A stretch of DNA of 64,000 nt from Haliotis rufescens. Taxonomy: Eukaryota. Positions 10,601 through 64,000 of this stretch are shown here, piece by piece. Made by a program: the position numbers and the translations under genes. The stretch is taken from positions 26,536,001 through 26,600,000 of the forward strand of contig NW_025963846.1 of NCBI RefSeq assembly GCF_023055435.1, in the 5' to 3' direction. The notes under the pieces were generated by a model. It made no database searches. It worked only from the letters and a program-made list of their open reading frames with translations, and was not told where the DNA came from. The number at the start of each line of letters is the position of its first letter. The stretch's first letter is position 1.

Positions 10601-13600
10601 ACCATACAGCCAAACACTAACTATCATACAAGTAGTCACATCTACCATACAGCCAAACACTACCTATCATACAGGTAATCACAATCTACCATACAGCCAA
10701 ACATTAACTATCATACAGGTAATCACAATCTACCATACAGCCAAACACTAACTATCATAAAGGTAATCACAATCTACCATACAGCCAAACACTAACTATC
10801 ATACAGGTAATCACAATCTACCATACAGCCAAACACTAACTATCATACAGGTAGTCACATCTACCATACAGCCAAACACTAAATATCATATAGGTAATCA
10901 CAATCTACCATACAGCCAAACACTAACTATCATACAGGTAATCACAATCTACTATACAGCCAAACACTAACTATCATACAGGTAGTCACAATCTACCATA
11001 CAGGCCAACACTTACTGCCTTACAGGTAATCACAATCTACCATACAGGCCAACACTAGCTGCCTTACAGGTAATACAGGTAAAAATATGTATATATATAT
11101 CTATATATGTTGTGGTAAGCAATATATTTACATTAACAACAACAGGTAATGGATTACAAGAAGCACACAGATAATTGGATGAAGCCAGATGTACAATCAA
11201 ATAACAGACAGGCAATAAAGACAGGTGTGCAGTGAGGATTAAAATGTTGTAACAGGCTAAGAGAGAGTATATATGGATGTCAATTTTTATTCCGAGAAAC
11301 ACAACGTTTCTGGGTAAGAAACTACAAGTGGCCATTGGAATCATAAGATATCAGCCAGCTTTGAACCGTGACCAGGGAACGTATCTGCCTTGTGCTTGAC
11401 TTATTGATTAATTAATCTGTGCCGTTGCATTATGCCCCTATGAAGACTAATTACTCCTGCTGGCTGCCATTTGTCCAGGCATAATACACCCCTGCCCTCC
11501 ATTTGTCTATTGCTCATTACCAAGCAGTGCTAATTTAAATCCTTGGTTCCATCTGTTCATTGCTAAAGACCAATCAGCCGCTAATCAATTGTTGGCTTCC
11601 CTTGTTACGTTTCCACCATTATTATCTATTTATTTGTGTTGCTTTTTACATGTGCATATATATGCTCTCTGCATCCTAGCATTCATGCGATTGGTTACTC
11701 ATTATAAAGAGTATATTACTTGATTAGATCTTCATAGGCAGACTGGATGTAACACCCTTGATCTCTGTTGATAAAACGTTGATGACGGTGGATATTTATG
11801 TTTTATGAGAGTTTTTTGTGAAGACCTGATGTTTGGTAGAGAGGGTTTGAACTTTGTCAAACTGATGGCTGGAAAACTTTTGCCGGGGTTCTGAGAGGGC
11901 TTATTTGCTTTTGAAGTTTAAGGTTCTTTGATGCGGGTAACTACATAGCCACAATAAATCTTACAGATGACTTCGTGTTGGTGGAAGGGTTAATGCCATT
12001 GGCGTGGATGATTCTACATAGGGATGGGGAGCTAGTGAAGATGGTATCGATGACTGCCCGGTGCTTAAGTAATCTGCTAATTTGATGTTAAGTCTTGCCA
12101 ATGTAGTGTAGAGTGATTCTGATTGGGACGGATTTTGGTCTGGATTGTTTGGATTTGGGCTGGAGTGCAGTGGAGATGGTCCTCATGACAAGTTTGGTAG
12201 GATACTGGTTAAGGTTTGTTAAGACATGCTCCCGATGATTAGGCTCATGGTTAAGGTCAAAGTTGCAGGAGCAGATGTGTTCTTCTCTCTTGGTCAGTGT
12301 GAAGTTGATGCCGGACTTCGTTTTGGGATTGGTGAGAGTTGAAATGAATTTCCTGGTCAGAATTAGTAGACGTCCTGTGTGGTTGTGATCTTGTTACTGG
12401 GGTCTGTCGATTCAAGAACGTCAAGGGAGGGGAGTTGTTGCTTGTTCTCTGTCTCCATGGTGAATTAACTCCGGGGTGTTGAGGTGCTTGGGAGGTGAGG
12501 TGGGATCATGTCCTTTTGAACATGACAACTAACGTGTGCAAGCAAACGGGTTGGATGTGGAGAGGGTTTTTTCTATGTCTCTGTATTGGATCCATGTCTC
12601 TGTGTACGGGTAGTGTAGGTTCTACATACATGGGATCTATCTCTCTGTGTACAGGTAGTGCAGGTTGTAAATACATGGGATCTACCTCTCTGTGCACTGG
12701 TAGTGTAGGTTGTACATACATGTAATCTGTCTCTCTGTGTACAGGTGGCCAGTGTAGGTTCTACATACATGGGATCTATCTTTCTGTGAACAGGTAGCCA
12801 GTGTAGGTTCTACATACATGAGATCTATCTCTCTGTGTACAGGTAGTGTAGTGTGTACATACATGGGACCTATCTCTCTGTGTACAGATAGTGTAGGTTG
12901 TACATACATGGCATCTATCTCTCTGTGTACAGATAGTGTATGTTGTACATACATGGAATCTATCTCTCTGTGTACAGATAGTATAGGTTGTACATACATG
13001 GGATCTATTTCTCTGTGTACAGTTAGCCAGTGTAGGTTCTACATACATATGATTTGTCTCTGTGTGATCAGTTAGTGTAGGTTCTACACACATGGGATCT
13101 ATCTCTCCAACAGGACAGTATACTACAAGCAGCATGTGTGCAACTCTGGATACAGATCTACCGATAACCATGGCTGTCCGCACGGTAAAACTACCTTTAC
13201 GAAAAAATTGTATACTTTTAATCACAAATATATTTAAGGGACTAATCAGTACATTGATATGAATATGTAAGCTGAAAAAGGCTCTGTCATTGATAGACAT
13301 GTAGTTTATTAACTTCATCAATACATCCGTAGCCATCTGCGACAACGTCATTAACCCAAACGGCGCCTGCAACATTGACTATCCTACGTCCCACATCATC
13401 TACAGCAATGGCTTGACCCAATACAGTAGCGGGGGCACCTGCAGCCTCCCCGAGATATGCACTAACTGCAAGATGGGCTTCTATGCCAGCCTAAACAGAT
13501 GCCGGAGTAAGTGGTTAACTGTCAACTTATCTAATATGCACACGTATTCCTCAGTGACCGAGTGCTCACAGATCCACATACAGTCGGCTTAAATAACAAC

Positions 13601-16600
13601 GATAGTGGGTTGATTTGTAGAAATACATTTTGTTTCATTTTCCTGAAGAGAGGCTTGGCAAATTGGCATCTCTGACTGGTTCATGCAAATAAATCATTAA
13701 TAAAGTGCTGACATGTTTCAATAATCATGATACATATATCACAACTGGGTATCTTAATTACGTTGACAAAGTCTGAAATTCCTTCTGGTCACTTGGTTAC
13801 CTGCAGTTCTCAGGTCGGTAGTGTTTGTATGCCCTGTTTTCTGCGGACAGTGTGCTCGGCCATCTCCAACTGTGACCTGGAGGAATGTACGTCGCCCTCT
13901 GACCAGGTGTGTTCCCGTTGTGAAGGGGTGTACAGGGATCGGCCTGGGGAACGAGCGTACGCCGACACCACAGACAAGAAATCCTGTATCCGTAAGTATC
14001 GGGAATTGTGGACACCCACTCACCATCTTTAATATACTTGTTATTTAATACAATGCTGCATACCTCCATTTGGACGAGGTATTACAAAGGCCTTCTTTGC
14101 TCAAAGGATCTGCATAATTGATGACAATAACAACCTATTCAGAAATCAAATGTAGAAATTGTTGTAACAGTTGTTCATATGAATGAGTTTGAATATATGC
14201 ATGTTTTGACTTGTGACAACATTTAATGTTTCAAACAGACTGGTTTAAGAGGTTTTTATTAAGTGTGTTTGAAGATTTGTTGTCCCTGTTTAAGAAACCA
14301 CTGGTAAGAACAAGACTTTACTCTGTGTCATTGAAAGACATGTAACAACTGGCGCCGGTGGAGTAGGGTATAAACAGTAATAGGCAAAAGTATCGAACAG
14401 AGAGTATAGTACTTGATATTGCCTTGAAACATTTGGTTAAAGCAAAATCAGGTCCGTGCGTGTATTAACAACTTTGAGCTGAAGACATGTCCAGTTCTCT
14501 TTTGTACTACATTCCAAAGCTCCATAAATTTCCGTACAACGAAAAATATACACCTCATCAAAAGTATCTCACCAACAAAATTTGTTGAAAATCAGAAAAG
14601 AAAAGTGTAAAGAGAAGCTTGAAAGCAAAACAAAAGTGTTACTTAACGTCACAGAAGATGTTAATTCATGAATGAAAGGAAAAATGAGCATTTGCACAGA
14701 AAAGAAACAACATTATTCGCCAGCGACTACAAGGCCTGTAACTGTGTAAATATGATAACTGTCAGGAATGAGATAGACAGATCAAAATGTACATGTCTCA
14801 GGAACGTTTTACCCATGTCACAGTTAGATGATCAATAGTGTAAGCCCCATGCACGGATCACATCCACAAGACGCCTCCTCATCCCCAACTGAGGTATGTG
14901 TTGCCATTCCTGATGCAATTTAGGGCATCGTTGTCCACAGAGATAGGACGAGTTGCAAGTACATGGTTATCAAAATAAGGCATAACAAAACCGTTCAATA
15001 TGGTATCTTGTAACCTTTGTCCATTTAGAGCCCCCTGAACTGTCACAAAATCAAATTTACAGTCAAAGAAGCAGCATGCCTATACCATCCCGATCCTCCA
15101 CCTGAGGCCTCTGTTTCCTGGATGTTTTGCTGATGATAAGATGTTCCTCTTTGCCTCCACACAAGTCCTACCACCAGCGTAGACCTTCTCTCGTAAGTCC
15201 AATGAATCCCCCTCCATGACCTCAAGATCCAGTGTGCTCGATTCTGACACCAGGCTACAGAGCCCAGCATATAATGGGGTGAGAGCAGGGGACGTCTTAT
15301 TGGTGTTGTGGCCCTTAATCCTGCTGCATTCAGTCGACTCCTGATGGTGCTAGTAGGGATGCTCTGTTGTTGGTATGTCAGTGATGATGAAGAACAGTGC
15401 AAGTTTTGCCTGGCCTACAAGGACTGTGTCCTCTCTGTCACTGGTCTTCGTGGACGTCCTGATCTCGGCATGTCCCTCACATGTCAAGGCAAAGTGTGTT
15501 TTCTGATCAGTCTACAGATTACAGCATGATTAATGTTCGACACAGCAACAATATCCCGACATGTCATGCCAGTTCGGTGCATGCCAATGATTTGCCATCT
15601 TTGATTGTCTAGGACATTTCAGTTACAATCGTAATAATAGTTAGGAATAATAGTAATAGCATGAACTTTCCGTCATCAAACATGAATTTCTCTATTTAGA
15701 CCCCTTAGCTGTGCATACGGTTCACATTAACGCACCCACAAGGTGGGGCAGTTAAGGTGTTTACCATTCTACAAGCAGATGATGTGACAACACACAGGGT
15801 GCAATTTGAACATCTCTACATTGAAAATAAACTCGCAATAATACTTCCAATTTGGTGGTGCAATAATTTTGATGAGGTGAATATATTGCAGGGCTCAGCA
15901 AATGTACCACCAAAGATGGTCCCTATCTCAGAGATTGACCATAATCCTTAACACAGTTAATATAGTACCAGAGAGAGGACGTGGTGATGAAGGGGATTCA
16001 CAAAAGTCAAAGCTTTAGCATGAATCTGTGCAATTCTCTAAGAAGTTTTGATTTTTCAACTTCATACCACACTATTCCACTTGTCTCAGATATAAAGACG
16101 GTCCTCCCTCGATTGTATTAAGAATTATGGTTTATCACTGAGACAGGAGTTTCATGGTACATTGGCTGGACCAATAAACAAATGCTCAGGGAATAGGCTT
16201 ATTCGTCAGGCTCTTACCTTTCTTGCGATTACGGAAAGTGTTTGTTACCGTTATCAAACATTTAACGATGATCATGTATTTGAGTCATGCTGATTGTCAC
16301 TGGACACGTCCGTAAAAAGTAATCCTTGATCAGTGACTCGAAATACGAAAAATGAGCCATCTCTCTCATTTTAGCCATACCTACTTTTACATGTCAGAAT
16401 TATAAGTATGGCAAATGTAAGGAAGAAGAAAGCCCAAATGCCAGCCAATCGAACATGCCTGATTTATTTTGAGACCAACATTTCAAAATGTTTTCATAAC
16501 CTTTAAATTTGACTTAATACCTCGTCCATTTTTTTTAATAATAACCGGATTAATGTTTTAGCTTTTCTGCCTTAACTGACTGGTGCGGATATATTTTATG

Positions 16601-19600
16601 ACAAAAGTAGTGAGGTTCCAGGGTAAAAGTTATTTGGCGATTTTGAAAATTTAATCACATATATAATCTATTTCAGTTTACAGTTGTAATGGTGCCTGTA
16701 GTTATATAAAATGCGACCTAATTCGCCTGTATGACTGACACACGTATGCTGTGTGTTTTTCAGAGGCATGTTCGTGGCGCAGTGACAGTACACGGTGCTA
16801 CCCGGGAGTATGTGCAGAGGAATATGCAAGGAATTGTATCTGTACAACAGAGTTTAGCGGAAGACACTGCGAGAAAAGTAGGAACAAAATACACATACAC
16901 ACCAATGTTACACTCTAGATCTGAGAGGAAAATAATAACACAAATGTTAATTATAAAAGTATTACAATAGTTTCCAATCAATGGTTTTCTTCTTATCCTG
17001 AAAACATTAAATATGTCAATTACGTCCTGCAGACAGTATGGTGAAAGGTTTCCACTCAACCATCTCTATATCCTTGCTGCCTGGGTCAGAGTAGGACGCC
17101 AGTGCCCCAATCTTGTTGATCAGTGAGCAACTGGGTGACTTGGCTGATTGCAGGAACTCGTACGCCAGTGGCGTGGATAGTAACTGTTGGTGATGTCACG
17201 GGTTTGCCGGGTCCAGGCCGTTGATATATCTATTTCTGCCTGCTGTTTAAACAACATTCACTAATCCACTCTTATCTATAAATACTCTTAGGTTTGCTGC
17301 AGAATGTGATCCGGTTCAACATTGTTTTGTTTCTGAAATTACGTCACCACCTCCATCGCTCCTATCTGTAGCTCAGCACAGACTTTCTGTTGCTCATGAG
17401 AGGCTTTTTTGGTGTGTGTTATTCATAAAGGGTTTAAAATAAAGATATGGTTTCGAATGGGTGTAGAAAAACGTCAGAGAATAACCAATTGCTTATCCGT
17501 CGAAATAGATTCTTTGGGGCTTTTTTTTAACTGTGCCTTCCTGTCATCGGGAAACTGATGAATCTGGCGGTTACAGACCATGTCATCTGAAACATCCGCC
17601 TTCCACCTGATATATTTGTAACGGCTCGTTACAGTCTGACAGTTGCAGTTTTCTTTACCGCTTGCCTTGATTGACAGGTCCTATCAACTTTGTTAGATGC
17701 TACTCTTCGTTCATTGGCAGCTGACTTTGTGGGAGAAAGAAATGGATGTCTGATACACTGCATCATCAAAGATGTATTCACTCTCACGTTGTGTTTCCAG
17801 TCGACACGTTCCCATCTATTTTGTACAACACACTGAAGGTGACCGGCCCGGGCCTGGACAAGGTGGAAGCCCCAGACAATCCCAATGAAGGAGCTCCCCA
17901 AGACAAGTCCTGGACCAACATCAACGACACAAGGATGATCTACTACAAATTCGAGACCAAGTTCATCATGACTGCGACTCCACCGCCCAGACAGGCCTAT
18001 GTTGAGGGCTTTGCTGTTGGCATCATCAACGCCAAAGCAACATTTGAAGTTAAAAGAAGTATGAACTCTGTGTTCTGTGAAAGTGTATTCCTTCATGATC
18101 ATTGAATAATTTTATGCCCGATGTCAATGCTATTTTGACTGTATCACTTGAGAGTGATTCAAAAACACATTCTCATGATGTTTGCATGTGTTTTCTACTG
18201 GTGTCACCAATGTGACCGGATACGCTCAATGTTTCCAAAGCACTTGGTATCATCATCATTTGAGAGTGATTCAAAAACACTTTCTAATGATACAGAGGGA
18301 ATTGTACCATTGACTCTTATACTTCTTATGGTTATTTAAAGGGGTTTGTGGCTTCCATTGATATCATAAATTATCCATTGTTAGTTGCTATTTGCTAAAT
18401 ATGTTCACTTTGGTTTTATTCACCTTTGGTCCTTTCAAAAACTATGTTTTAAGTTGTAAGTATGTTTCAGACGACTGTGTCATAATGAGCACTGTACGAC
18501 CTTGCAATGGCCCCAGTAAGACGGCACCTCATCAAACTAAGTTGACCTGTGAGGAGGACGTGACTGCAGATACCTTTCTCTCCCATCATGTGGAGAATGG
18601 AGATATGTGAGTCACGTGGCATGAGAGGCCTTGAACAACCAACGTATTGTTACAATAATCAAGCTCAACTCATCGAATACCCATTGAGTAAATTTCCAAT
18701 GACAAATATAATAGCCGGTTACATATTATGCAAGCTAACTGAACTTCTCTGATTATCCGTGTTTTCCTCAGAATGGAATTCACATTTGAGGCAACTAATG
18801 GTGGCTACGTTAAAGTGAGGAACAAGGAGAGCGGCAGTCTCGTGACTTACTACTACGAAGGGAAGACACAAATCAATCGTTATAGCCTCGGGTTTGACTT
18901 CATAGACCCACATCACTGCAGTGCAGATCTGGAGGAGAAATGCACAGATGACATGATATCACTGGCCAAGACCCACACACAGGTCAGTTGTGAACGATTA
19001 TTATGCTTAACAATGAGTTCAACAATGAGTCCACTTTCTGAATCACTGTACATGTAAACCAAATAGGGATAGATGATTGATTATAGTTGCTTTATTAAAT
19101 AGTTTTATATGTTGCGAACCTGAGGAATTAAAACTTTGTAATTGTAAAATGCGAGAATAGTACTCTCGTTATTATTCTAGTTTTGTAAGACTGTAGAAAC
19201 ATATATATGTTATTTGACAGTCGACTAGATATCTATTGTAGGAATGACCTCATAGAAACCTTCTGTGAGGTCAAAGACTGTTGCTGAATATTGTAGTTAT
19301 TATCTAGTCTGTCAAAAGTATATGGCGTAACATGGTTATAGATGTATGTACTCTTGGTCTCCAGGGTTATGGACACAATGAATACAGGAACAAAATCTGC
19401 ACTGGATGCTGCTTGACTCGCCATTAATCGGCCTGATTGTTACATGATGTTTACTTGTCAGTGATGTCCATGTGTTGATGAGTGTCATATACTCATGTAA
19501 TGTATCCGTCTGTCTCCAGGCTCCGATCTGTATCACGTGGCAGGGATGGAGGGACGACGTCCTGGTGTTCTCCTACTTGGTGTCGATATTTGAACTTTAT

Positions 19601-22600
19601 GACCAACATCCCAACAGAAGTGACTCTCAACTCGTGGAGAAATCACTAGCCTTTGAATCTGACAGATACAGCGGCGAGGTATGCTATTGTGACAGATAAT
19701 ATGCCTTCACTCGGTCACAGAGAGTTGCGTCCCTCACAGGTGTCATGACCATTGAGTCGCTGATTGGAAGCGCAGATTCGCAACGAATTTGATCCTTGGT
19801 CTCGACACCTCGTCCAGGCTCGTGGGTTTTAAGACCCGTGTTCCCATCTGCTTTGCTCCCACATTTAGCTGGCAAGCTGTGATATCTGGTCATGGTGGAC
19901 TTTGCGTTATCATGCTACAAACATAACCGATGTTGTTACATGTCACCTCGCCAATCCAAATGTATGATCAACAAGTATACTAGGGGGAATTACACACATG
20001 CATGAAACAGTTAATATATCATGATCATTATGTGTGATTGTTTATTGTCAAGACAATATATTTTTGTCATCTGATCTTTCACATCTAAATAATACATCAT
20101 TCATCCTTGGTTTGCAGATATCCTCGAGTCAGTTTCATCTGTCACACCCCGGGGTGTATGCCCTTGTTTTAACCGCTTACGACAAGGCCGAAAACAGCAA
20201 GAGTGCTCAGCGAATATTCATCTATGACGAGGTGTCAAAAGTGGGCGTGGTCCATGACACGAGGCTGCTAGTGACGTCATCGGCTTCTAGAACAACCCAC
20301 CGCTGGCAGAGGAATACGACGGAAGTGTCTGTCGACTGGGAGAAGAGGTAAGGAAGCATGCATCCACCAACTCGTGCCATCTGCATCACTGTAGTGTTTC
20401 TCTTGGTGACTTTGTCTCTCAAGGCATGTGACTGTTCAAAATTGGTGCCTGCTCACCAAACCACGAAGAGGTACCCAGTCGGATAAGAAATGCCTGACAG
20501 GCAGCTTTGGTTGAATATTCCCCAGGTCGTTGAGGACGTAATTAAAGTGCTCAGTGATCCATTGACAGGGACATAATCGCTTCTAGAATATTTTAGGAAA
20601 TGAGTGAGTAAATTGGGTTTTACTCAGCCATCAACATTCCAACAATATCACGGCGGAGGACACAAAAAATAAGCGCAACACATTGTACCCATGTGGGTCA
20701 AACACTTTAACAACTTATCCTTACCACATCGAAAAAACGCAATATAACTTAACTTCACATAAATTTGTCAAATGCTCAAACAAAATGTAAATGTTTTTGT
20801 GACAGCATTTACGTATATTTGTATTTTAAGTGCATAACAATATAACATCCCTATACACTGTACAGGTACATCAACCCCCTCCATTACAACAAGGGGTGGC
20901 TGAAGCAAGCGGCCTCCACGCATGACGTTACCCAGGACTACGACGATAACAACCACTCCAGGGGAATAGACGCCATTGATCACGTGCAGGGTGAGGAAGT
21001 GCTTGTGTTTCTTATGCTTCATTTCCCCAATACCTGCCTATTATGGATGAACAATGAGTCGAAATATCACAATTCCCTCAAGGTTGATAGTTGTATAGTG
21101 AAGGCTTCGAGAAAGAGGATACCCGTGCCGTCAGGGTACCATCAGTGGTTGATATCATGAGCAGTAACAAATGCCATCGGGCAGACAATCAGTGGTTGGT
21201 TGACTATCAGTAGAATGTTGTATTCACTGTATGCGGTCAGCAAGTTTACAAACATTGCTACCAGACCCGATAGTTTTTCCCTATCCATGTTATAAGACAT
21301 CTATGGATGTCTTGAATCAAAGCAGATTCTTTTTAACCAGTTGATCAAATGTTTCCATTAAATTCAACATTACATTTGTGATAAGAGGAAGCCCCTTCTA
21401 TCCCGTTCCCGCTCCAGGATCTTGGCTCATGTGTTGATGTAAATCTGCTATCCTTACAACAGGAAGGTAATGATTAGGCTTTTCAAAAATATGTTTATAT
21501 TTACGATCCCATTAGTTACATGTGTTTTATGTCCAATTGTTAATCATGTCAATTTGTTTTTGAGTTTTATCCATCAATTGTTATTTGACTGAATAAGCAA
21601 TCACCTCTACAATTACTCAGTTGGTGCCTTGTATCATTGTTCTGATTATAATAGTTTTGTGTACCCACATTTATATAACGCATCAGTAAAAGACATGGTT
21701 TACATGTTCCAGGCATAGTGGAATACCGCACCGCCTTCCTGACTGACCACAGTGGCGGCAGCAGCATCCTCTCTCCCCCTCCTGACGCCGACTTCCAGAG
21801 CCAGGGTTTGACTCAGCACCAGACAGTCACACCGGTCCTCGTGGACGGAGACACCGTCAGATTCTGGGTCAGGGCGTACGACATCAGGCGCGAACTCCTT
21901 GAGGAGAGCGTGACAGTCCACGTGGACACATCGCCCCCAGTCATAGAGAACCTGTGGCTCACCAGGGGAGACAGACTCAACATCAGTGTGCATAGAGTAG
22001 AGGAATTCAATGAAATGACGTAAGTTCTCTTTTTCTCCATGTTAAGTAAGGAAACAGTACCTTCAAAGCAAAACCGTGGCAACGGGTGACTCACTCGTCT
22101 CATCCGCCGCAATTTACGGCTCTAGGTTGCGTGCCTTCGGCTTTCGTGAAATTTATGATCATGGGTTCAAATCAAACTTCTCATTAATTATGTTTCTAGG
22201 TTTGTCAGTACCATGCCGGTGCTCGTAGGATTCACATCACTCCGTGAATCAGACATGCCGTGGAAATAACTAAAATACTGTTCAAAGGCTCCTTAAACCA
22301 AACTCAACCACTCATACACCTTAGTACTATGTCTTGCATTTAAGATTTGAGTGGCTGGCGTTTGACGACCACAGTGGTCTAGAAACTGTGTCGTGGAGAC
22401 TCTACGACAACATCACCGGCTCAGACATCTACCACGGAGAAGAACATCTATCAGCTCAAGGAGACACGCAAGTACATACCTTCCTTCATTTATTCGTCTT
22501 AGGGAGGTCCAATCTTGTTGTAATATTGGGCACGGATACCTAAACAGGGCACGGATACCTAAGTATTTATTCAGTTGTGTTTAATTACCCCAGACACTGG

Positions 22601-25600
22601 CCAAGTGCACAGCGAGGTACGGCGACTATGCACGGGGTGCCAACTGCTACTGTACGCCAGGGACAGGGTGTTACCACAGACACTTCCAGATCAAACCACG
22701 CATAATCTCATCTAATCTCAGTCATGGTGGCCTATTCCACGACATGCACAAGGGCGTTCACGACTCCGACTACTTCATCGAGATTACAGTAATGAACCAC
22801 GCCAAACTAAACATGTCGCTTGCAATCAAGGTGAGGACAATACGTTTCTGTCTACATAAAGCATGAGTGAACAAAATGTGCAAGCACCTGATTCAACTAG
22901 TGCTCGACGGTGTTACGGTATTTATCTGTCTAGATTCTTAATGTAACGATGATACTACTAAACATACATGTAACTAAAGCCACCCTGACACTTGCACGAT
23001 TTTTGTCCCTGCAATGCCGCGCAAAGCGTCGTGGCAAGGCATGCCATTTCAGTGGTACGCAGCGGAGCGTGAAGCCGCTTTTGCACCCTGTTCGCGCAAT
23101 CTCTACGCAATGCACGGCCAAAAATGGGCCGCATTAGCACGCATTGACACGCAATGGCACGACTTGTTTACGTCTAGGTTAAGTATTGTTCGCGCATTGT
23201 TCACGTCTTCCGTACCGTCACATACGACACGCATAGTTCCCGCTGTTTTCCCGCATCTCCACGCATTGCCCCGACGACTTCGCGCTTTGGTCACGCTTGG
23301 CGGCACTCTTCAAATCTCGCTATTGGCGTATGTATATAAACTCAAAATAGAAGAGATTCTTCATTCCTCGACTCGCTGTGGACGATACAACATGCTGAAT
23401 ACCAGAGTTATTGTTATTGCAGAACAGAGAAGGTGTCTATATCTGGCAGCTGCAGGACTATTACTTCTTGAAGAGCAGGAGAAAAGGCAGCAAGAGCAAG
23501 AGGAAGAGCATGAGAAAGAAGAAGAGACAACCCTAACTAGAACAAGGAAAGCAAGGACAGTGTGGGTTAGGGAATGGTTGGCGAGAAGACATGAGTTCGC
23601 ACATTATAATCAGCTATTGACAGGACTCCATAAGGAAGATCCAAGAGGCTAAAGGAATTACCTGAGAATGACACCTGACCTGTTCCAAGAAATGGTGGAG
23701 AAATTAACCCCTCACCTTAAGAAAGAGACCACATTCATGAGAGAACCGCTTGAAGTTGGACTCAAGCTGGCTGCCACCCTCCGCTTCCTAGTCACTGGAA
23801 ATTCCTATCCAAGTCCACAGTACAGCTTCAGAGTTGAAGCAAGTACAATCTGCAAGTTCTCACCAGAGGTGTGCAAAGCCATCATTGAGGTCTTCAAGGA
23901 CGAAGTGCTCAGCTGCCCCAAAACTCAAGAAGAGTGGATGGGTGTTGCTGAGATGTTCAAGCACGTTGCTATGAGGACGCCACCCAAAGCAGGCTCCCTC
24001 TATTATAATTACAAGGGCTTCCACATCATTGTACTCATGGCAGTTGCAGATGCTTGGTATAAGTTCTTGTATGTTGATGTTGGGGCAGAGGGTGGTGCCC
24101 CATTGAGCCAGTCCTTCTGTCTCTTGTCATACAACTGTGGGTAGTCGTTTACATATTCTGCTAATTTCATGGTACCCTCATCTGTCCACTTATACTCAGG
24201 AATGTCTTACTTGGACACTCTTGGATTCTCTTCTTCTGTTTTACTGTGGGCTCTTCTTCACGTGACAGTTCTATTTAAGTCTCTGTGAAAACTTCAAGTT
24301 GTGTCTGTGGAACAACATCCACACTTGAGCAGGAGGAAGGAGGAGAAAGATTCCTCTCCCTATCAGTCTATTTCTTTGTTTCTGGACTGTCCTCTTCCTG
24401 TCTATTTTTGCACTGGTCTTCCCCTTCTTCAACGTACTTTCTCCTTGTAAGGCATGTTGTCCGTTTGCTGGCAAGTTGCAGACTTTCTCCTTGTAAGGCA
24501 TGTTGTCCGTTTGCTGGCAAGTTGACCAGGACCCGCTTACATACGTGCTGACGCGAGCGCCGTCGTCGCTCATTTGTCGGGAACTATGCGCGAACAATGC
24601 GTAAACACTTCGTGAGCAGTTTGTGCATTGCGGGAATGGTTCGTGACGTGTGCGACCTGTGCGTGAGCTGGGCGTTCCATGATTACGTGAACAACTCGTG
24701 AGAACACCCTAACAACCGCACGATCACTCCGCGACACGCGCCAACAACGTGGACAGTTCGTGACCAATGCGTGGCATGGCGTGTCAGAGCGTGTAGTGGA
24801 TTCCCATGGCACGCATTGACACGCACCGTCGGCAGTGTTCGCGTCGAGCTCGTACAGTGTTCACGTCGAGCTCGTACAGTGTTCACGCATGGTTCACGCA
24901 AGTGGCACGCACATGGCACGAAAATTGATGCGTGCCAAATTGTTGAACATTTTGCAATTCTCTCTACGACATGGCACGCATCCGCGCACCCTTCACACTC
25001 TCCTCACGCTCGGTCCCCAAAGACTTTAATCATTGGCATGCCGAAGAGCGAGGCATTGCGGAAACAAAAATCGTGCAAGTGTCAGGGTGTCTTTAAACAC
25101 ATTACACATTCTATGAAGTTAGTGTCTCTCTAGTTGACACATCCTATGATGTTACTGCCTCTCTAGTCGACACAATCCATGATGTTACTGCCCCTCTAGG
25201 TGACAAAAGCTGTGATGTTACTTCCCCTCTATGTGACACATTCTATCATGTTACTAGCAGTCTAGGTGACACATTTTATGATGTTACTGCCCCTCCAGGT
25301 GACATATTCGGTGATGTACCTGTCCCTCTAGGTGACATATTCTATGATGTTTCTGCCCCTCCAGATGACACATTCTATCATGTTACTACCCCTCCAGATG
25401 ACACATTTTATCATGTTACTACCCCTCTAGGTGACATATTCTATGATGTTACTGCCCCTCCAGATGACACTTTCTATGATGTTACTACCCCTCCAGATGA
25501 CACATTCTATCATGTTACTACCCCTCTATGTGACACATTCTATCATGTTACTGCCCCTCTAGGTGACACATTCTATGATGTTACTGCCCCTCTAGATGAC

Positions 25601-28084
25601 ACATTGTATGATGTTACTGCCCCTCTAGGTGACACATGCTATCATGTTACTGCCCATCTAGGTAACACATTCTATCATGTTACTGCCCCTCTAGGTGACA
25701 CATTCTATCATGTTACTGTCCCTCTAGGTGACACATTCTATCATGTTACTGCCCCTCTAGGTAACAGTAGATGCAAGTGCACCGCACCCTGGAGTTGTCC
25801 ACGATGGTCAGTCTGGATTCTCGGAAGTGGACTACCAGGACAGTCTGCAGCTCCACGCCCACTGGGACGGCTTCTTTGACCGGGAGAGTGGGGTCAAGTT
25901 CTACCAGTATCAGTTCTCTGACAAGTGTCTACAAAAGGAGAATTTCGGTTTGGATACGAGTGTTTTGAATGTACGTGTGTGACTTCCTTCGCGTGAGGGT
26001 TTATCTGGTTTTCTTCCAGGGTGCATATACCTTACGTGCGTCTCAAATCATTACAATTACAGGTGAAGGAAACCTACTCGACACATGCAGCATGGCCGGC
26101 ACCTTCCCCAGGGACGTATCACGTGACAGTGGTGGCCTACAACCAGGCCCTCGAGGCATCTGACCCTGTGTGTTCTGACGGAGTGACCATTGATGATTCA
26201 CCACCAGCAGTGGGACAGATTGCTGTAGCCTCGTCTAGCATTGCCCCGGGTCTGGTCACCACCTCATCAGGCACGGTCTGGTTCATAGACAATCGCCGCA
26301 GGAGAAGCAGAATTACTGAACCAGATACCCAATGCAGGTACGAACCAGCAAGATATTTAGATGTGTTAAAGTTATAACAATAAAATTCTTGTTGCCTGTA
26401 CATTAAGAAAAAGAACTTTCAAGATAATGTTTGACGTCTTTGTTTAGAAGGTTCCTATACGCCTTTGTGCACAAACGTCACGGAACAGCGGATAGACATA
26501 ATGGAGATCCCTCTGTATTTGTTGCCTGTACATTATGAAATCTTAAAGAACTTTCAAGATAATGTTTGACTTCTTTGTAAGAGCACCTTTTCGCCTAAGT
26601 GCACATGTATTAAAGAACAGCGCCAAGACATATCGCTATCCACCTGTTATTATATGATGGGTCCCAACATGTTTTTAGTAAGATCTCACGTTGCACAATC
26701 AACTGCCATCTTACAATCAGTATAATGCTCTAACTGTGGGAACAATGTGCTGTCCTTGTCATGTTGGAGGCATAATTAATGTCGTTTATCGGAGTTCCCC
26801 TTAATAAAACTAGATGGGGGATTGACGTATGGCTGTGTCTATGGTGTATAAGATAATGGATGGCTGCAGTGATCTCGCCACCGACTGTAATTGATTTATC
26901 TTTTAATATTTATATGTCACCAATTTTCAAAACAGAATTACCCTTAAGTTCGTATAGCTGTAGGTCCCACTCCGTGTTCATGGTATACTCTGACGAATCT
27001 TTCAGATCCAAAGGGACAGCAATCGACGCGGCAGAGTTAGAGAAGTTCCCCATTCACGTGATGAAAGATGGAACGATGGTGAAACGAAATGCAACATTTT
27101 GCATACAAGCCTTGTCAAGCTTCTACCAGATACACATTTCTGCAAACCACAATGTACGAGATATAAAAATACATTCTAAATCCTTCATGATTATGTCCAT
27201 ACCTGGTGTTAAATGCTGAAGTGTTGTAACGAGTCTCATGTGACAAAGGTTTTCAGTTTTTCACCACTTCTACGCCCTTTTCCTTCCCTTGATAGTAGTG
27301 GGAATTTTCACCCTTAATAAATCGACAAGTTTTTAAAAATGCCGTTTAAAGATCATCATAACTCGGTAGATTGAGACTCACGTATATCAATATCAGGATT
27401 CTGCGAGTGGCTTCTGTCAATGATATATTCCTCTTGCCAGATGTTTGTAAACTGGACCGGAACTGACGCGGAGAGCGGTATCCATGACTACGAGGTGGGG
27501 CTGATGTCAGATCCTTCTGGTGAAGCAGCTCCAGACATCCTGCCGTACACGTCCACTCATCATCATCCCCAGTATCAAGGCTACCACCCTTCTCTCAGTG
27601 AGGGGCAACAGTTCTACATAGCCATCAAGGCCATCAACAAAGCTGGGCTTACAACCATTCAGGTAAGTTGACACAAATGATATATCAATATGTTTTGTCG
27701 TGCATGAGTAAATTATATCAGTATCGAGTCAAACCAGGGACTGACAGCATGACATACTGTCCATGCAATCGTGGTTCCGTGACAATGAATCAGCCAGGTC
27801 ACAGTTCCTGACTCCCGATCCTTATATTGGCTACTTTGGCAAACAACCTTTTCCGAACCTGAAATCCAACAGGATCTCTCTGGGTTGTCCAAATATATTT
27901 ATATTCTGAGACTCTAACATATCTGTCCCTATATCTGTTTGAGCATATTTGATGATACATAACCTTTTGAACTACATGACCCATTTCTCGGAACCTCCAT
28001 GAACAACGCCCCTCATCTCGCGGCCATGTTTACTCCTTGTCTCTTCAGATCCTGGGACTTGTCCTCGTGCACACCTGCCTTTAA
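7583..28084 (+). CDS. Gene copy A: large secreted-type EMI-like/EGF/TNFR-like + FN3/Ig-like repeat protein, 19 exons, about 1,088 codons; exon 1 outside window, 3' end truncated
   Basis: Manually spliced at GT-AG junctions with consistent phases: 7583-7666, 13114-13184, 13333-13506, 13851-13991, 16764-16877, 17801-18058, 18471-18606, 18772-18982, 19520-19678, 20118-20347, 20866-20990, 21713-22019, 22345-22471, 22594-22830, 25761-25970, 26063-26337, 27006-27153, 27441-27662, 28049-28084. No internal stop before the last exon. Confidence 0.88.
7667..11075. repeat. 22-bp minisatellite (caggtaatcactaactgtcata) evolving into a 44-bp dimer, with a 1,097-bp higher-order duplication
   Basis: Begins at the exon 2 donor. 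Diagnostic variants recur at offset 1097 (8944/10041, 9661/10758). Confidence 0.95.
11140..12450. mobile_element. Penelope-like element remnant with inverted halves
   Basis: + strand AIGIIRYQPALNRDQGTYLP (GIY-YIG C-terminus) near 11330-11400; - strand RITLHYIGKT*HQISRLLKH (post-RT region) at 12061-12120. Confidence 0.75.
12570..13113. repeat. 45-bp minisatellite (catgggatctatctctctgtgtacaggtagtgtaggttgtacata) ending at the exon 3 acceptor
   Basis: About 12 units; the last unit catgggatctatctctccaacag supplies the AG. Confidence 0.95.
13114..13184 (+). CDS. Copy A exon 3 (RTVYYKQHVCNSGYRSTDNHGCPH)
   Basis: caacag|...|gtaaaa, phase 2-1. Confidence 0.85.
13333..13506 (+). CDS. Copy A exon 4, EGF-like (AICDNVINPNGAC...GGTCSLPEICTNCKMGFY...CR)
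   Basis: ccgtag|...|gtaagt, phase 1-1. Confidence 0.9.
13851..13991 (+). CDS. Copy A exon 5, TNFR/furin-like Cys module (CSAISNCDLEECTSPSDQVCSRC)
   Basis: ggacag|...|gtaagt, phase 1-1. Confidence 0.9.
14551..15879 (-). mobile_element. Tc1/mariner transposon, degenerate
   Basis: About 33-bp imperfect TIRs (cacctcatcaaaa... / ...ttttgatgaggtg) with TA at the left flank. Transposase remnants STIRSRLNAAGLRATTPIRRPLL...WRGIHWT. Confidence 0.85.
16764..16877 (+). CDS. Copy A exon 6, EGF-like (ACSWRSDSTRCYPGVC...CICTTEFSGRHCEK)
   Basis: tttcag|...|gtagga, phase 1-1. Confidence 0.9.
17801..18058 (+). CDS. Copy A exon 7
   Basis: ttccag|...|gtatga, phase 1-1; lies within ORF 17746-18105. Confidence 0.85.
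18471..18606 (+). CDS. Copy A exon 8
   Basis: tttcag|...|gtgagt, phase 1-2. Confidence 0.8.
18772..18982 (+). CDS. Copy A exon 9 (MEFTFEATNGGYVKV...)
   Basis: cctcag|...|gtcagt, phase 2-0. Confidence 0.88.
19520..19678 (+). CDS. Copy A exon 10 (APICITWQGWRDD...)
   Basis: ctccag|...|gtatgc, phase 0-0. Confidence 0.88.
20118..20347 (+). CDS. Copy A exon 11 (PGVYALVLTAYDKAEN..., FN3/Ig-like strand)
   Basis: ttgcag|...|gtaagg, phase 0-2. Confidence 0.9.
20601..20730 (-). mobile_element. tRNA-derived SINE remnant with (ACTC)n tail
   Basis: tgagtgagt tail followed by the aatatcacggcgg...cacattgtacccatgtggg body; related to the 57.4 kb pieces. Confidence 0.55.
20866..20990 (+). CDS. Copy A exon 12 (YINPLHYNKGWLK...DYDD)
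   Basis: gtacag|...|gtgagg, phase 2-1. Confidence 0.88.
21713..22019 (+). CDS. Copy A exon 13 (DGDTVRFWVRAYD...VHVDTSPPVIENLWL)
   Basis: ttccag|...|gtaagt, phase 1-2. Confidence 0.92.
22345..22471 (+). CDS. Copy A exon 14 (FEWLAFDDHSGLETVSW)
   Basis: tttaag|...|gtacat, phase 2-0. Confidence 0.88.
22594..22830 (+). CDS. Copy A exon 15 (NCYCTPGTGCYHRHF...HDSDYFIEITVMNHAKL)
   Basis: ccccag|...|gtgagg, phase 0-0. Confidence 0.9.
22978..25092 (+). mobile_element. PIF/Harbinger transposon with internal deletion: transposase (+) and convergent MADF/Myb gene remnant (-)
   Basis: About 40-bp TIRs caccctgacacttgcacgatttttgt flanked by TAA/TTA. Transposase motifs VWVREWL, NYLRMT, KLAATLRFLVTG, YYNYKGF, YKFLYVDVGA. 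Minus strand KLAEYVNDYPQLYDKRQKDWL at about 24100-24170. Confidence 0.92.
25100..25768. repeat. 33-bp minisatellite (ttctatcatgttactgcccctctaggtgacaca) ending across the exon 16 acceptor
   Basis: About 20 units; the last unit reads ...cctctag|gtaacagt. Confidence 0.95.
25761..25970 (+). CDS. Copy A exon 16 (VTVDASAPHPGVVHDG...EVDYQ...WDGFFDRESGVKFY)
   Basis: ctctag|...|gtacgt, phase 0-0; core FN3-like repeat motif. Confidence 0.9.
26063..26337 (+). CDS. Copy A exon 17 (PGTYHVTVVAYN...SDGVTIDDSPP)
   Basis: ttacag|...|gtacga, phase 0-2. Confidence 0.9.
27006..27153 (+). CDS. Copy A exon 18
   Basis: tttcag|...|gtacga, phase 2-0. Confidence 0.78.
27441..27662 (+). CDS. Copy A exon 19 (VNWTGTDAESGIHDYEVGL...FYIAIKAINKAGL)
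   Basis: tgccag|...|gtaagt, phase 0-0. Confidence 0.92.
28049..28084 (+). CDS. Copy A last visible exon, apparently frameshifted (ILGLVLVHTCL*)
   Basis: cttcag acceptor, phase 0. The +1 frame continues PAFNGGF, as expected after a deleted DxTPP motif. Confidence 0.55.
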   Translation: MLGLVLVHTCL

Positions 28085-32000: not shown

Positions 32001-32054
32001 CTGGTAACGTCACAACTTCCTGGTGAGGGAGTTCGCGATCACGACTGTTCAGTT
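32001..32054 (+). promoter_or_regulatory. Putative core promoter: CRE-like + ETS motif and Inr
   Basis: ctggtaacgtcacaacttcctggt is identical in both modules; TCAGTT at 32049 lies 38 nt before the ATG. Confidence 0.5.
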
Positions 32055-32086
32055 GAGAGGAAAGAGGAGAGTTGTAAAGGACGTCG

Positions 32087-32160
32087 ATGAAGCTTGTACT
32101 CTGTGGTTTTGTCACATGTCTTCTCCAGTTCCACAGTGTTGATGGACTTGTGGAAAATGC
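32087..32160 (+). CDS. Signal-peptide exon 1, distal copy (MKLVLCGFVTCLLQFHSVDGLVEN)
   Basis: ATG, hydrophobic core, VDG cleavage-like site and gtaaga donor in phase 2, compatible with exon 2. Confidence 0.75.
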
Positions 32161-38788: not shown

Positions 38789-38842
38789 CTGGTAACGTCA
38801 CAACTTCCTGGTTAAGGAGTTCTGGATCGTGGTTGTTCAGTT
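38789..38842 (+). promoter_or_regulatory. Putative core promoter of gene copy B (CRE-like + ETS, Inr)
   Basis: Same 24-bp motif as at 32001; TCAGTT at 38837. Confidence 0.5.
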
Positions 38843-38874
38843 GATGGGGAAGAGGTGAGTGGTGAAGGATGGCA

Positions 38875-38948
38875 ATGAAGCTGGTATTCTGTGGTTTTGT
38901 CTTAATTCTTCTCCAGTTCCACGGCGTTGACGGACTTGCGGAAAATGG
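38875..38948 (+). CDS. Gene copy B exon 1, signal peptide (MKLVFCGFVLILLQFHGVDGLAEN)
   Basis: gtaagt donor in phase 2; splices in frame to 51914 giving ...LAENGINVITNV. Confidence 0.8.
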
Positions 38949-50300: not shown

Positions 50301-50745
50301 TTTCAACTGTTCCCGGCCTGTCCTTAGTGTTGCCGACATGTCCCTACCGTTAACGACATAATCCTTCTGTTGTCGACCTGTCCCTATTGTTGCTGACATG
50401 TCCTTACTGTTGCCGACATGTCCCAACTATTGTAGACATGCCCCAACTTTTGCCGACATGTCCCTACTACTGCCAACATCATGTCCCTACTGTTGCCTAC
50501 ATGTCCCAACTATTGTAGACATGTCCCAACTTTTGCCGACATGTTCTTTCTGTTGCACACCAGTCCTTTTTCTTTCCAACTTTTCCCAACTGTTGCCGGC
50601 CTGTCCTTACTGACGACGACATGTCCCTACTGTTGGCTACATGTCCCAACTATAACCGACCTGTCCCTACTGTTGCCGATATGTACCTTCTCTTACCGAC
50701 CAGTCCATTTTGTTGCCAACATGTCCCAACCCGTCGCCGACATGC
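41395..50745. repeat. 20-bp minisatellite (tactgttgccgacatgtccc), about 6.8 kb net, with higher-order blocks, interrupted by a LINE
   Basis: Hundreds of units; 120-bp periodicity near 42.0-42.4 kb and 220-240-bp periodicity near 48.0-49.2 kb. Confidence 0.97.
43865..46356 (-). mobile_element. L1/Tx1-clade LINE, 5'-truncated, inserted in the minisatellite
   Basis: NWRPISLL, DFEKAFDTV, RQGDPLSPYLF, QFADD, zf-RVT CSFC...H...C; A-rich tail; TSD tccttactctt at 43854-43864 and 46357-46367. Confidence 0.93.
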
Positions 50746-50885: not shown

Positions 50886-51913
50886 GATACATATTCTGTT
50901 ATTTTAGTATGTACGGTTTTGTTCAACACATCTATGGATGGAAACTGGTCAGTTTTCATAAAGTGAACTATTGTCGTCCATAATTCATACTTTTTTGCAA
51001 ATTGAGTGTGTTTCAGACTTACTTTTGTCACTCCCTTTTATATATTGAGCACACTTGAAATAGAACCCTTTCCATGGCATATCTGTGGTTGCTTCTACAC
51101 ATCCTCCCAAGGATTGAGTCAAAAGATACGATCATCTGTGTCATAATTAGGTCTGTGTTTAAAGATTCTTTCTAATAGTCAACTTTCCATTCATGTCGAG
51201 CAATATTTCAGACGCTCCTGCTGTTTGTGTTTTCATTTCCTAAGTTTTGAGGTACAATCGAGCATGCTCATTCTTCGAAGATTTCAAAGAGCATCCTACG
51301 ACTCTTGCTCAAAGCTGTTACAGCATCCAAGGCCTGTGGATGTGGAGGACATTTCCAAATTTGCGCATCAATGACAAAACTAATGTTCAATGCAATTTAC
51401 TTTTGTCACCTGTACAATATGTTTTTTTCAGGTAAAACATTGACTTGCCTTTGTAGTTACCACAGTTACCTTGTTTCACTGACATTTAGAAATAGTAAGT
51501 TGCCTGTGGACAACTGACTGACTTTGTATGTATTTGTGACGGGTGACACTGTTGGAGCAGGATACGTGAACCATTCTGCAAACACCTGGCTTCATCAATA
51601 TTTGATAATTGTGTAGAAAGGATTTTGTCACTTTTATTCGTTTTGTTCACTTGGATGGGCGAGGATATTCGTGAACGAACTTGAAGTATCTGAGCAATTT
51701 GCATGGACTATGGAAACCCCTCAGTGCCAGAATCAATAGGAAATTGGTTATGGTTTTTTTTACACGAGAAAAACTGCTTTGAACAGCATTGCCATGGCCT
51801 GTTAAATGAACTTGGAAATCTTACCTAATTATGTGTTAACTCATATATCAACAGACTCCTTTCTTGTTGTGCAAGTATGTTAGAAGTCACAGTCACGTTT
51901 ATCTTTGTTGCAG

Positions 51914-52003
51914 GATAAATGTCATCACGAACGTGAAGTCACGCAAGAAGACATCTTATACATCGTGCGGGTTCTTGTGGTTGAGTCGGTGCAGCAAATA
52001 CAG
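51914..52003 (+). CDS. Gene copy B exon 2, EMI-like tip (INVITNVKSRKKTSYTSCGFLWLSRCSKY)
   Basis: ttgcag|...|gtaata, phase 2-2; paralog of 7583-7666. Confidence 0.85.
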
Positions 52004-52835
52004 GTAATAGCCGGCTGTCATACAGGTATTGATCAGATGTAATACATGTATTCACTGCTTAACATATATTGTCATATATGTATTGACTAACTGCTATACA
52101 GGTAGTCAGCAACTGTTGTACAGGTATAGATCAACTGTCACACAGGTAATCACTAACCGCCATACAAGTAATTACAAACTGCCATACAGGTAAATCACTA
52201 ACTCTCATATGGATAATCTTTTACTGGCATACAGGTAATTACTAATTGGCATACAGGTAATGACCAACTGCCATACAGATAATCACCAACCGTTATGCAG
52301 GTAAATCACTAACTGCCATATAGATGTTCACTTACTGTCATACATGTAATCACAAATTGTGACTAACTTCAATACAGGTAATCACTAACTATCACGCAGG
52401 TAAACACTTACTGCCATATAGGTAATGACCAGCTGACATACAGGTAATCACAAACTGTTATACAGGTAACTCACTTACTGCCATTACAGATATGCACTTA
52501 CTGTCATGCAGGTAATCACTAATTATCACGCAGGTAATGACTAATTGTCACGCAGATAATCACAATCTACCATATATACGAACACTCTCATACAGGCAAA
52601 CTCTAACTGTCATACAGGTAAACACTAACTATCATACAGGTAACCACTAACTGTCATACAGTTAATCACCAATGGTCGTACAGGTAATCACTAACTGTCA
52701 TAAAGATAATGACCAGCTGTCATATAGATAACCACTAACTGGCATACAGGTAATGGTCAACTGTCGTACAGATAATCACTGGCTGCTATACAGGTAATAT
52801 CCAATTGCCATACAGATAATCACCAACTGTCATAT
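52004..52835. repeat. 22-bp donor-derived minisatellite, short version
   Basis: Same unit as 7667-11075. Confidence 0.92.
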
Positions 52836-57300: not shown

Positions 57301-57968
57301 GAATGGGATCTATCTCCTTGTGTACAGGTAGTGTAGGTTGTACATACATTGGATCTATCTCTCTATGTACAGGTAGTGTAGTGTGTACATACATGGGATC
57401 TGCCTCCATGTGAATGAGTGAGTATGGTTTTACGCTTTAACCACTAGGCTACCCGACCGCCCCCTATCTCCTTGTGTACAGATAGTGTAGGTTGTACATG
57501 AATGGGATCTATCTCCTTGTGTACAGGTAGTGTAGGTTGTACATGAATGGGATCTATCTCTCTGTGTACAGATAGTGTAGGTTGTACATACATTGGATCT
57601 ATCTCTCTATGTACAGGTAGTGTAGTGTGTACATACATGGGATCTACCTCCATGTGAATGAGTGAGTATGGTTTTACGCTTTAACCACTAGGCTACCCGA
57701 CCGCCCCCTATCTCCTTGTGTGCAGATAGTGTAGGTTGTACATGAATGGGATCTATCTCTCTGTGTACAGGTAGTGTAGGTCGTACATACATGGGATCTA
57801 TCTCTCTGTGTACAGGAAGTGTAGGGTGTACATACATGGGATCTATCTCTCTGTGTACAGGTAGTGTAGGGTGTACATATATGGGATCTATTTCTCTGTG
57901 TACAGATAGTGTATGTTGTACATACATGGGACCTATCTCTCTGTGTACAGGTAGTGTAGGTTGTACAT
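54385..57968. repeat. 45-bp minisatellite, expanded version (with 41-bp variants)
   Basis: Same unit as 12570-13113. Confidence 0.97.
57410..57708 (-). mobile_element. Two copies of a 55-bp internally deleted SINE co-amplified with the minisatellite
   Basis: Minus strand ggggcggtcgggtagcctagtggttaaagcg (A-box head) is fused directly to a ccatactcactcattcac tail; copies at 57410 and 57654. Confidence 0.7.
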
Positions 57969-63404: not shown

Positions 63405-64000
63405 GTCAGTGTAGGTTGTACATACATGTGATCTATCTCTCTGTGTACAGATAGTGTAGGTTGTACATACATGGGATATATCTCTCTGTGTACGGGTAGT
63501 GTAGGGTGTACATACATGGGATCTATCTCTCTGTGTACAGATAGTATAGGTTGTACATACATGGGATCTATCTCTCTGTGTACAGGTAGTGTAGGTTGTG
63601 TATACATGTGATCTATCTCTCTGTGTACAGGTAGTGTAGGTTGTACATGTATGGGATCTATCTCTCTGTGAACAGGTAGTGTAGGTTGTGTACACATGGG
63701 ATCTACCTCTCTGTGTACAGATAGTGTAGGTTGTACATACATGGGATCTATCTCTCTGTGTACAGATAGTGTAGGCTGTACATACATGGGATCTATATCT
63801 CTGTGTACATATAGTGTAGGTTGTACGTACATGTGATCTACCTCTCTGTGTACAGGTAGTGTAGGTTGTACGTACAGGACATCTATCTCTCTGTGTAGAG
63901 GTAGTGTAGGTTGTGTATACATGTGATCTACATCTGTGTGTACATATAGTGTAGGTTGTGTATACACGGGATCTACATCTGTGTGTACATATAGTGTAGG
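63405..64000. repeat. 45-bp minisatellite resumes to the window end
   Basis: Same unit as 54385-57968. Confidence 0.97.

Follow-up and report, generated by a model that had tools for sequence, protein, structure and literature searches.

Exon 2 of a tandemly duplicated gene in Haliotis rufescens, present twice in the 64,000-nucleotide (nt) stretch analysed here (the window; contig NW_025963846.1, positions 26,536,001 to 26,600,000, forward strand), differs between paralogs at about twice the rate of the introns. The gene product is a large type-I membrane protein, to which exon 2 contributes the ~30 residues next to the signal peptide, and the gene is one of eight paralogs in a tandem cluster. 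Paralogs A and B lie in the window, with exon 2 at 7583..7666 (84 nt) and 51914..52003 (90 nt) respectively, both on the forward strand. The most likely account, to which we give a probability of about 0.5, is that diversifying selection acts on the loop encoded by this exon against a background of intron homogenisation. An earlier note on this DNA had argued that the exon evolves far faster than its own intron and hence under positive selection. Positive selection is plausible, but this stronger claim is not established.

According to the proposed mechanism, the exon 2 loop would be a putative recognition surface, where diversifying selection maintains or increases the differences between paralogs. 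In the surrounding introns, repeated gene conversion or unequal exchange would make the paralogs alike, probably with the help of the long minisatellites on either side of the exon. Selection and homogenisation together would make the exon appear faster than its intron. If selection is the cause, exon 2 identifies the functional surface in a large family of receptor-like proteins that extends from amphioxus to molluscs and whose function is undescribed. It would also provide a compact system (eight genes, with one 90-nt exon each) that joins diversifying selection, gene conversion between paralogs and splice-site-derived minisatellites. If only relaxed constraint and conversion are at work, the pattern is nothing unusual for a young tandem family.

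Exon 2 in transcripts and across eight gene copies

The splicing and reading frame of exon 2 were examined using four public contig sets (runs X1 to X4) of transcriptome-like character. The run type is presumed, and the spliced RNA nature of the contigs rests on their GT..AG joints. Contigs were aligned to window positions 7520-13519, the region of copy A. In three of the four runs (X2, X3 and X4), contigs link 7583-7666 to exon 3 at 13114-13184 (71 nt, retained in all eight paralogs), with 5447 nt skipped. All four runs contain contigs that link 13184 to exon 4 at 13333-13506 (174 nt, a Cys-rich module) and then continue into sequence matching 13851 onward, the start of exon 5 (13851..13991, 141 nt, also a Cys-rich module). 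Exon 4 is open in one frame only, and this fixes exon 2 in the frame proposed by the earlier note. Contig letters immediately 5' of 7583 match 32131-32159 and 38919-38947, with two mismatches each. At each of these sites a signal-peptide exon ends in a GT donor of the right phase, so exon 2 directly follows a signal-peptide exon, as had been suggested. In copy B, exon 2 was assigned by its AG/GT borders, its translation and its homology to the RNA-confirmed exon of copy A.

Exon 2 is symmetric, being in phase 2 at both ends with a length that is a multiple of three, and could be skipped without loss of frame. Together with a stop codon in one copy (c4) and the lack of any contig of run X1 over the exon, this would suit a stretch that is not a functional coding exon, such as a decoy exon, a poison exon or an artefact of annotation, with the divergence then reflecting neutral drift. 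We consider this very improbable, and it is largely refuted by the contigs of the other three runs, which include exon 2 at a depth similar to that of exons 3 and 4. Further, the frame is open in seven of the eight copies, residues homologous to exon 2 occur in annotated proteins of four Haliotis species and of other phyla, and neutral drift would not outpace the intron rate.

The exon 2 peptide reads INVITNVKSRKKTSYTSCGFLWLSRCSKY in B and INVITNVLSRRVTYSTSCGWWGRCTRH in A. It comprises a conserved strand (INVITNV), a basic stretch and a Cys-loop. The loop has a C-G-x3-7-R-C pattern rich in W, F, L and Y, and is predicted from its sequence to be closed by a disulfide. Acidic residues are absent from it in most copies, in agreement with its initial description as a cationic and aromatic loop. 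Two other readings of this exon were rejected. A small macin-like or neuropeptide-like product was ruled out by the RNA joints and by homology, which make this the second exon of a large protein. Frame 1 looks conserved in six of the eight copies, but frame 2 is dictated by the phases of exons 3 and 4, and copies c7 and c8 have stops in frame 1.

The eight exon 2 copies in the genome all lie on one contig, five at 26.54-26.92 Mb and three at 29.87-30.00 Mb, and each has exons 3-5 located 3-22 kb downstream. Exon 2 of copy c2 is identical to that of B, leaving seven distinct sequences, with lengths of 84, 90 (six copies) and 93 nt. The preservation of the cysteines and splice sites, first noticed between A and B, extends to all eight paralogs: both cysteines and the AG/GT sites are kept throughout and every indel is in frame. 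The claim that the frame is also preserved holds for all copies except c4.

Divergence of exon 2 and tests for selection

Copies A and B were compared by aligning 51800-52300 to 7470-7970, with p values from one-sided Fisher tests. Exon 2 differs by 17 substitutions in 84 positions (0.20) and a 6-nt in-frame gap, and 10 of 27 aligned residues are changed. By the Nei-Gojobori method (NG86), the differences comprise 4.5 synonymous and 12.5 non-synonymous changes. The first 82 nt of intron 2 (52004..52085 in B, 7667..7748 in A) differ at 3 of 82 positions. All of these A-B counts agree with those first reported. The intron segment is itself unusually similar between copies, however, and in B it forms the degenerate start of a 22-nt repeat array. 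Its A-B divergence is lower than that of non-repetitive intron 2 (p=0.02) and of introns 3 and 4 combined (p=0.05), and B differs from c2 and from c4 at 0 of these 82 positions.

Other comparisons still place exon 2 above its surroundings. Its divergence between A and B is higher than that of the near flanks (-50..-1 and +1..+82; 8/132, p=0.0017), of non-repetitive intron 2 (151/1421, or 0.106; p=0.009) and of introns 3 and 4 (47/490, or 0.096; p=0.006). Against a wide flank (-110..-1 and +1..+300) that includes minisatellite units and a homology breakpoint, no exon excess is seen (65/384, or 0.17; p=0.28). Exon 2 runs at about twice the intron rate between A and B. The notion of an exon far faster than its own intron therefore survives as a roughly twofold excess over other introns, and not as the roughly fivefold one that the unusually similar 82-nt yardstick had given.

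Among the remaining copies, the largest contrast is between B and c4, with 12 differences in 90 exon positions compared to 6 of 379 in the wide flank (p=9e-6). The immediate flanks of this pair (0/60, 1/39 and 0/82) differ at 1 of 181 positions, and 4.4 kb of intron 2 show 2-3% divergence. Exon 2 also exceeds the wide flank in B-c5 (16/90 vs 21/390, p=3e-4), c3-c4 (p=0.009) and c3-c5 (p=0.028), whereas no such excess was found in B-c3 (p=0.26) or in any comparison with A. Tree length, as summed maximum-likelihood branch lengths, is 1.06 substitutions per site in exon 2, compared to 0.55 in the flanks and 0.46 in the exon 3-5 block. Among the 21 pairs of distinct copies, the proportion of non-synonymous differences (pN) in exon 2 is greater than total divergence in introns 3 and 4 in 19, and in 16 of these at nominal p<0.05, although the pairs are not independent.

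A similar picture emerges from related proteins. Across eight Haliotis proteins, mean pairwise identity is 0.53 in the segment equivalent to exon 2 and 0.70-0.82 in the equivalents of exons 4 and 5 and the next 600 residues. In the closest pair, from H. cracherodii and H. rufescens, 27 of 31 residues are identical in the exon 2 segment, compared to 915 of 953 over the other six segments. Within the ectodomain, the segment encoded by exon 2 changes fastest, and no other part of the 5' gene is as divergent.

Codon models were fitted using a custom maximum-likelihood implementation with F1x4 codon frequencies and a fixed exon 2 topology. Pairwise omega (the ratio of non-synonymous to synonymous rates, dN/dS) scatters around 1 in exon 2, with extremes of 0.25 and 4.4. 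In exons 3-5, for which counts were added up over the individual exons, 26 of 28 pairs have values of 0.25-0.9, and the other two give 1.10 and 1.45. For all seven distinct copies, model M2a fits better than M1a (2dlnL=7.8, p=0.020) with 31% of sites at an omega of 3.5. Sites 8, 12, 15, 17 and 22 have posterior probabilities above 0.8, and the high-probability sites map to the basic stretch and to the interior of the loop. The same comparison gives p=0.016 without c4, p=0.089 without c8 and p=0.10 without both.

Several observations weigh against diversifying selection as the cause. The models rest on 28-31 codons in seven distinct sequences from one genome. The single-ratio model M0 gives an omega of 1.06 for all seven copies (p=0.85 against 1), and of 1.18 without c4 (p=0.62), 1.53 without c8 (p=0.30) and 1.68 without c8 and c4 (p=0.23), so that omega is never significantly above 1. 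The site-model result weakens to p=0.09-0.10 once the very divergent c8 is left out, and recombination, which is pervasive here (four-gamete failures at 43 of 105 site pairs in exon 2 and 95 of 253 in the flanks), is known to inflate this test. Synonymous divergence is raised in some exon 2 pairs, with a dS of 0.28 between A and B against an intron level of ~0.10, which older ancestry or a higher mutation rate would explain as readily as selection. Exon 2 is also CpG-rich, with 6-8 CpGs at an observed/expected ratio of 1.2-1.3, compared to 0-1 CpGs and a ratio of 0-0.5 in the flanks. A CpG context applies to 9 of the 35 variable exon 2 columns, and pure transitions account for just 13. Given these counts and an estimated kappa of ~1, CpG decay can account for part of the excess, but not all of it. 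Finally, exon 2 of c4 (locus at contig positions 26917917-26918156) contains an in-frame TAA, while exons 3-5 of this copy are open. Because the stop-bearing exon is symmetric, skipping it would preserve the frame.

In an alternative account, positive selection plays no part and the N-terminal segment is under relaxed constraint (omega ~1) outside a few framework residues. The exon would then keep an older, true divergence with some added CpG mutations, while introns and downstream exons are homogenised by conversion or unequal crossing-over. Relaxed constraint plus conversion ranks close behind diversifying selection, and we regard it as a serious possibility, albeit a somewhat doubtful one. 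It would explain an M0 omega that is indistinguishable from 1, an exon 2 dS as high as dN in A-B, B-c5 and B-c7, the CpG content, the c4 stop codon, and the discordant genealogies and near-identical kilobase tracts described below. It is also consistent with the poor conservation of other parts of the Haliotis relatives, namely the signal peptide (mean identity 0.42) and the exon 3 equivalent (0.60); the cytoplasmic end is likewise variable (0.43). On the other hand, it requires conversion tracts to stop at both exon borders, as in the B-c4 pair. In pairs that do not involve c8, synonymous divergence in exon 2 (pS 0.05-0.28) is near the intron level and pN is about twice that level, which relaxed constraint does not readily give. 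Indels are exclusively in frame and the cysteines are kept in all eight copies and across phyla. In addition, M1a already requires a constrained class of sites, and M2a fits better when all copies are included.

On balance, the earlier proposal of positive selection stands as a plausible cause of a real excess in divergence, and remains unproven. Codon models of the kind that the note had suggested as a check give a divided answer, with site-model p values of 0.016-0.10 set against omega values of 1.06-1.68.

Exchange between paralogs

Approximately unbiased (AU) tests gave mosaic genealogies for the three segments of the locus. The exon 3-5 block rejects the trees of the other two segments (p=0.001 and 6e-5), exon 2 rejects the flank tree (p=0.017) and the exon 3-5 tree (p=2.5e-4), and the flanks reject the exon 3-5 tree (p=0.011) and, marginally, the exon 2 tree (p=0.048). 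Long tracts are nearly identical between some copies. In a tract that starts ~300 nt before exon 2 and continues to at least +1.7 kb, B and c2 have 0-2 differences per 125 nt (~0.2%); further upstream they diverge by ~5.6%, and in exons 3-5 and their introns by 8-10%. Over the whole of intron 2, B matches c2 at 96-97% identity in two blocks (2.3 and 4.8 kb) and c4 at 97-98% over 4.4 kb, and blocks shared among the three are 96-100% identical. By contrast, the exon 3-5 block is ~87% identical, gaps included.

Based on the discordant genealogies and the near-identical intron 2 of B, c2 and c4, gene conversion explains part of the contrast between exon and intron, and it accounts for the young-looking introns. 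The contrast is not free of recombination or gene conversion. Local conversion as the source of intron similarity, which the earlier note had named as an outcome that would count against its inference, is therefore borne out in part, by the AU tests and the near-identical kilobase tracts. Conversion leaves unexplained how a c4 exon that differs from that of B at 12 of 90 positions comes to lie within B-like flanks, unless the exchanged tracts stop at the borders of the exon or are sorted by selection.

A further explanation is that exon-sized tracts are exchanged between paralogs, with or without selection, making exon 2 a patchwork of a few old blocks whose divergence was imported. Copy c4, with its B-like flanks and the loop block of c5, and copy A, which shares its 3' end with c8, both have the appearance of such patchworks. 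The mutual AU rejections between exon 2 and flanks and the four-gamete failures within the exon also fit this explanation. Nevertheless, we find it unlikely. The only exon identity between copies is that of B and c2, and each copy has private changes. Four-gamete failure is at the same level in the flanks, indicating that exchange is not specific to the exon, and exchange alone does not account for the blocks staying different. Diversifying selection on the loop, combined with homogenisation of the introns, remains our preferred interpretation.

The minisatellites around exon 2 may act as a substrate for this exchange. In B, Tandem Repeats Finder (TRF) identifies a 22/44-nt array in intron 2 (52070..52834) with a unit that carries the exon end plus donor (..ATACAG|GTAAT..), and repeat detection places a 22/44/88-nt array in intron 2 of A (7796..11077), both on the forward strand. 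The 22-nt unit contains ..ATACAGGTAAT.., which copies the exon end and splice donor, and in both A and B the array starts within the first 82-170 nt of intron 2. A 45-nt minisatellite (12588-13107, 54407-57968 and 63408-64000) reaches the exon 3 acceptor (13114) and has a unit that resembles the acceptor region. On this resemblance, the 45-nt array would be the 3'-splice-site counterpart of the donor-derived 22-nt array.

Protein family, neighbouring features and known systems

Homology searches were run exon by exon and not on a joined spliced protein. Using one downstream exon, phmmer gave 263 proteins at E<=0.001, most of them 1000-3500 residues long with several domain copies. All named matches are annotated as "uncharacterized protein" and come from amphioxus, a hemichordate, a sea star, Haliotis species, Lottia, Patella, Pomacea, bivalves and a nemertean. 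Titin and fibronectin are matched by the family profile through their FN3 domains, and fn3 is recognised by Pfam in long members. None of ten ORF (open reading frame) pieces from the window scored above the Pfam cut-off. Gene A aligns with H. rubra protein P0161 through 13 collinear blastx high-scoring segment pairs (HSPs) over window positions 13001-31500, at 36-72% identity. Eleven of these are further exons in the FN3-like repeat region (16763..27665, forward strand). By these similarities, the gene is a member of an uncharacterised family of FN3-repeat membrane proteins (Haliotis LOC124141846/7-like; amphioxus LOC118405866-like), and the encoded protein is predicted to consist of Cys-rich N-terminal modules followed by many FN3-like domains. 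A literature search of a limited collection found nothing under six of the family locus names, nor anything on the family in a search on abalone.

The N-terminal module shared by the Haliotis relatives comprises a signal peptide, NV-x-T..Y, the C-G-aromatic loop, RC-T/S-R/K-Y-R and Cys-rich modules, and its framework and cysteines are conserved from amphioxus to molluscs. Haliotis and Patella relatives (P0133, P0159, P0162, P0163, P0165, P0166 and P0120) have a C-terminal transmembrane helix and a tail with three to six Yxx(L/I/V) motifs. Some of these fit immunoreceptor tyrosine-based inhibitory or switch motif (ITIM/ITSM)-like patterns, and the tail motifs hint at a signalling receptor.

The relatives' motif C-G-W..C-(T/S)-(R/K)-Y-R ... 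CC-x-G-W/Y resembles the EMI consensus. We did not adopt an EMI assignment: none of nine family proteins (P0133, P0050, P0109, P0033, P0031, P0001, P0011, P0164 and P0161) matches Pfam EMI (PF07546) at E up to 1 or 10, and PDB sequence searches, including those with the family profile, found no EMI-containing solved structure. In a language-model search with the N-terminal part of the nemertean protein P0050, a cluster that is 97% EMI ranks first with a score of 0.83, which serves as a lead only. Residues 96-122 of P0109 have a weak match to EGF_2 (E=0.0018, below cut-off). A broader and rather speculative reading, to which we give little weight, is that these genes form an undescribed invertebrate family of variable surface receptors with an EMI-like tip, an FN3 stalk, a transmembrane helix and a Yxx(L/I/V) tail. 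Such a family would have expanded in tandem, with the tip exon lying between splice-site-derived minisatellites and diversified by selection and cassette-like exchange, and might provide a germline repertoire for immune, allo- or gamete recognition.

Some neighbouring features of the two genes were also recorded. Two intact signal-peptide exons precede the single exon 2 of B on the forward strand, both identified by translation: copy B0 at 32087..32160, with donor GTAAGA, and copy B1 at 38869..38948, which encodes MAMKLVFCGFVLILLQFHGVDGLAEN plus 2 nt and has donor GTAAGT. The pair sits in duplicated ~1-kb blocks (31612-32656 and 38420-39437) of ~80% identity, with in-phase GT donors in both. 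A 100-nt signal-like ORF at 39703-39802 (MRKEIQLWVKVKTSVLLSALTLLWASS...), with donor GTAAGG, was dropped as out of phase with exon 2. Exon 1 of copy A lies outside the window. The last base of the exon 1 joined to exon 2 of A (7582-7583) is C or G depending on whether the contig is from X3 or X4, reflecting either an allele or two exon 1 copies. An AG at 13303-13304, 29 nt before the conserved exon 4 acceptor, is private to copy A, all seven others reading AC or AT at this place; splicing in the RNA contigs takes place at the conserved acceptor. A 20-nt minisatellite (4180-4654, 41395-43861 and 46357-50744), up to 4.4 kb long in B, lies within intron 1 in both paralogs and yields repetitive ORFs of up to 579 residues, which are almost certainly not genes. 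Transposase-like and reverse-transcriptase-like ORFs, known from the ORF list only, lie on the reverse strand at 40284-41252, 43931-45064 and 34125-34760, inside intron 1 or between the exon 1 copies.

Exons that are more divergent than their introns have classic precedents in snake-venom phospholipase A2 (PLA2) isozyme genes and in class I and II genes of the major histocompatibility complex (MHC). In PLA2 genes the contrast is attributed to accelerated exon evolution, and in MHC genes to homogenisation of introns by recombination while the peptide-binding exons are kept diverse. Both have an established dN>dS and known ligands, neither of which holds for exon 2. At the level of domain order, the position of the tip, immediately behind the signal peptide and in front of what may be EGF-like modules, resembles that of the EMI-plus-EGF N-termini of MEGF10, PEAR1 and Draper-type receptors. 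The window copies differ from these in having lost the first cysteine and the CC pair, and the remainder of the protein consists of FN3-like and not EGF repeats.

The Sp185/333 (SpTransformer) genes of sea urchins are a tandem and highly diverse immune family with mismatches between exon patterns and intron types (PMC1988830). Their intron is overall ~3 times more diverse than the exon (PMC1988830), the opposite of exon 2 here.

The type of pattern is already known, for example from the conotoxin gene superfamilies of cone snails, which have conserved introns rich in simple repeats, exon rates that differ greatly and positively selected sites in cysteine loops (PMC3862624). Unlike in conotoxins, the variable exon described here encodes the N-terminal tip of a protein of ~1000 or more residues with FN3-like repeats, and not a small secreted toxin. 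Its excess is about twofold with an omega that is not significantly above 1, and the signal peptide is not especially conserved among the Haliotis relatives. What the two systems have in common is a gastropod gene family with divergence that is focused on an exon and exceeds that of its own introns, in which the cysteine framework and reading frame are preserved.

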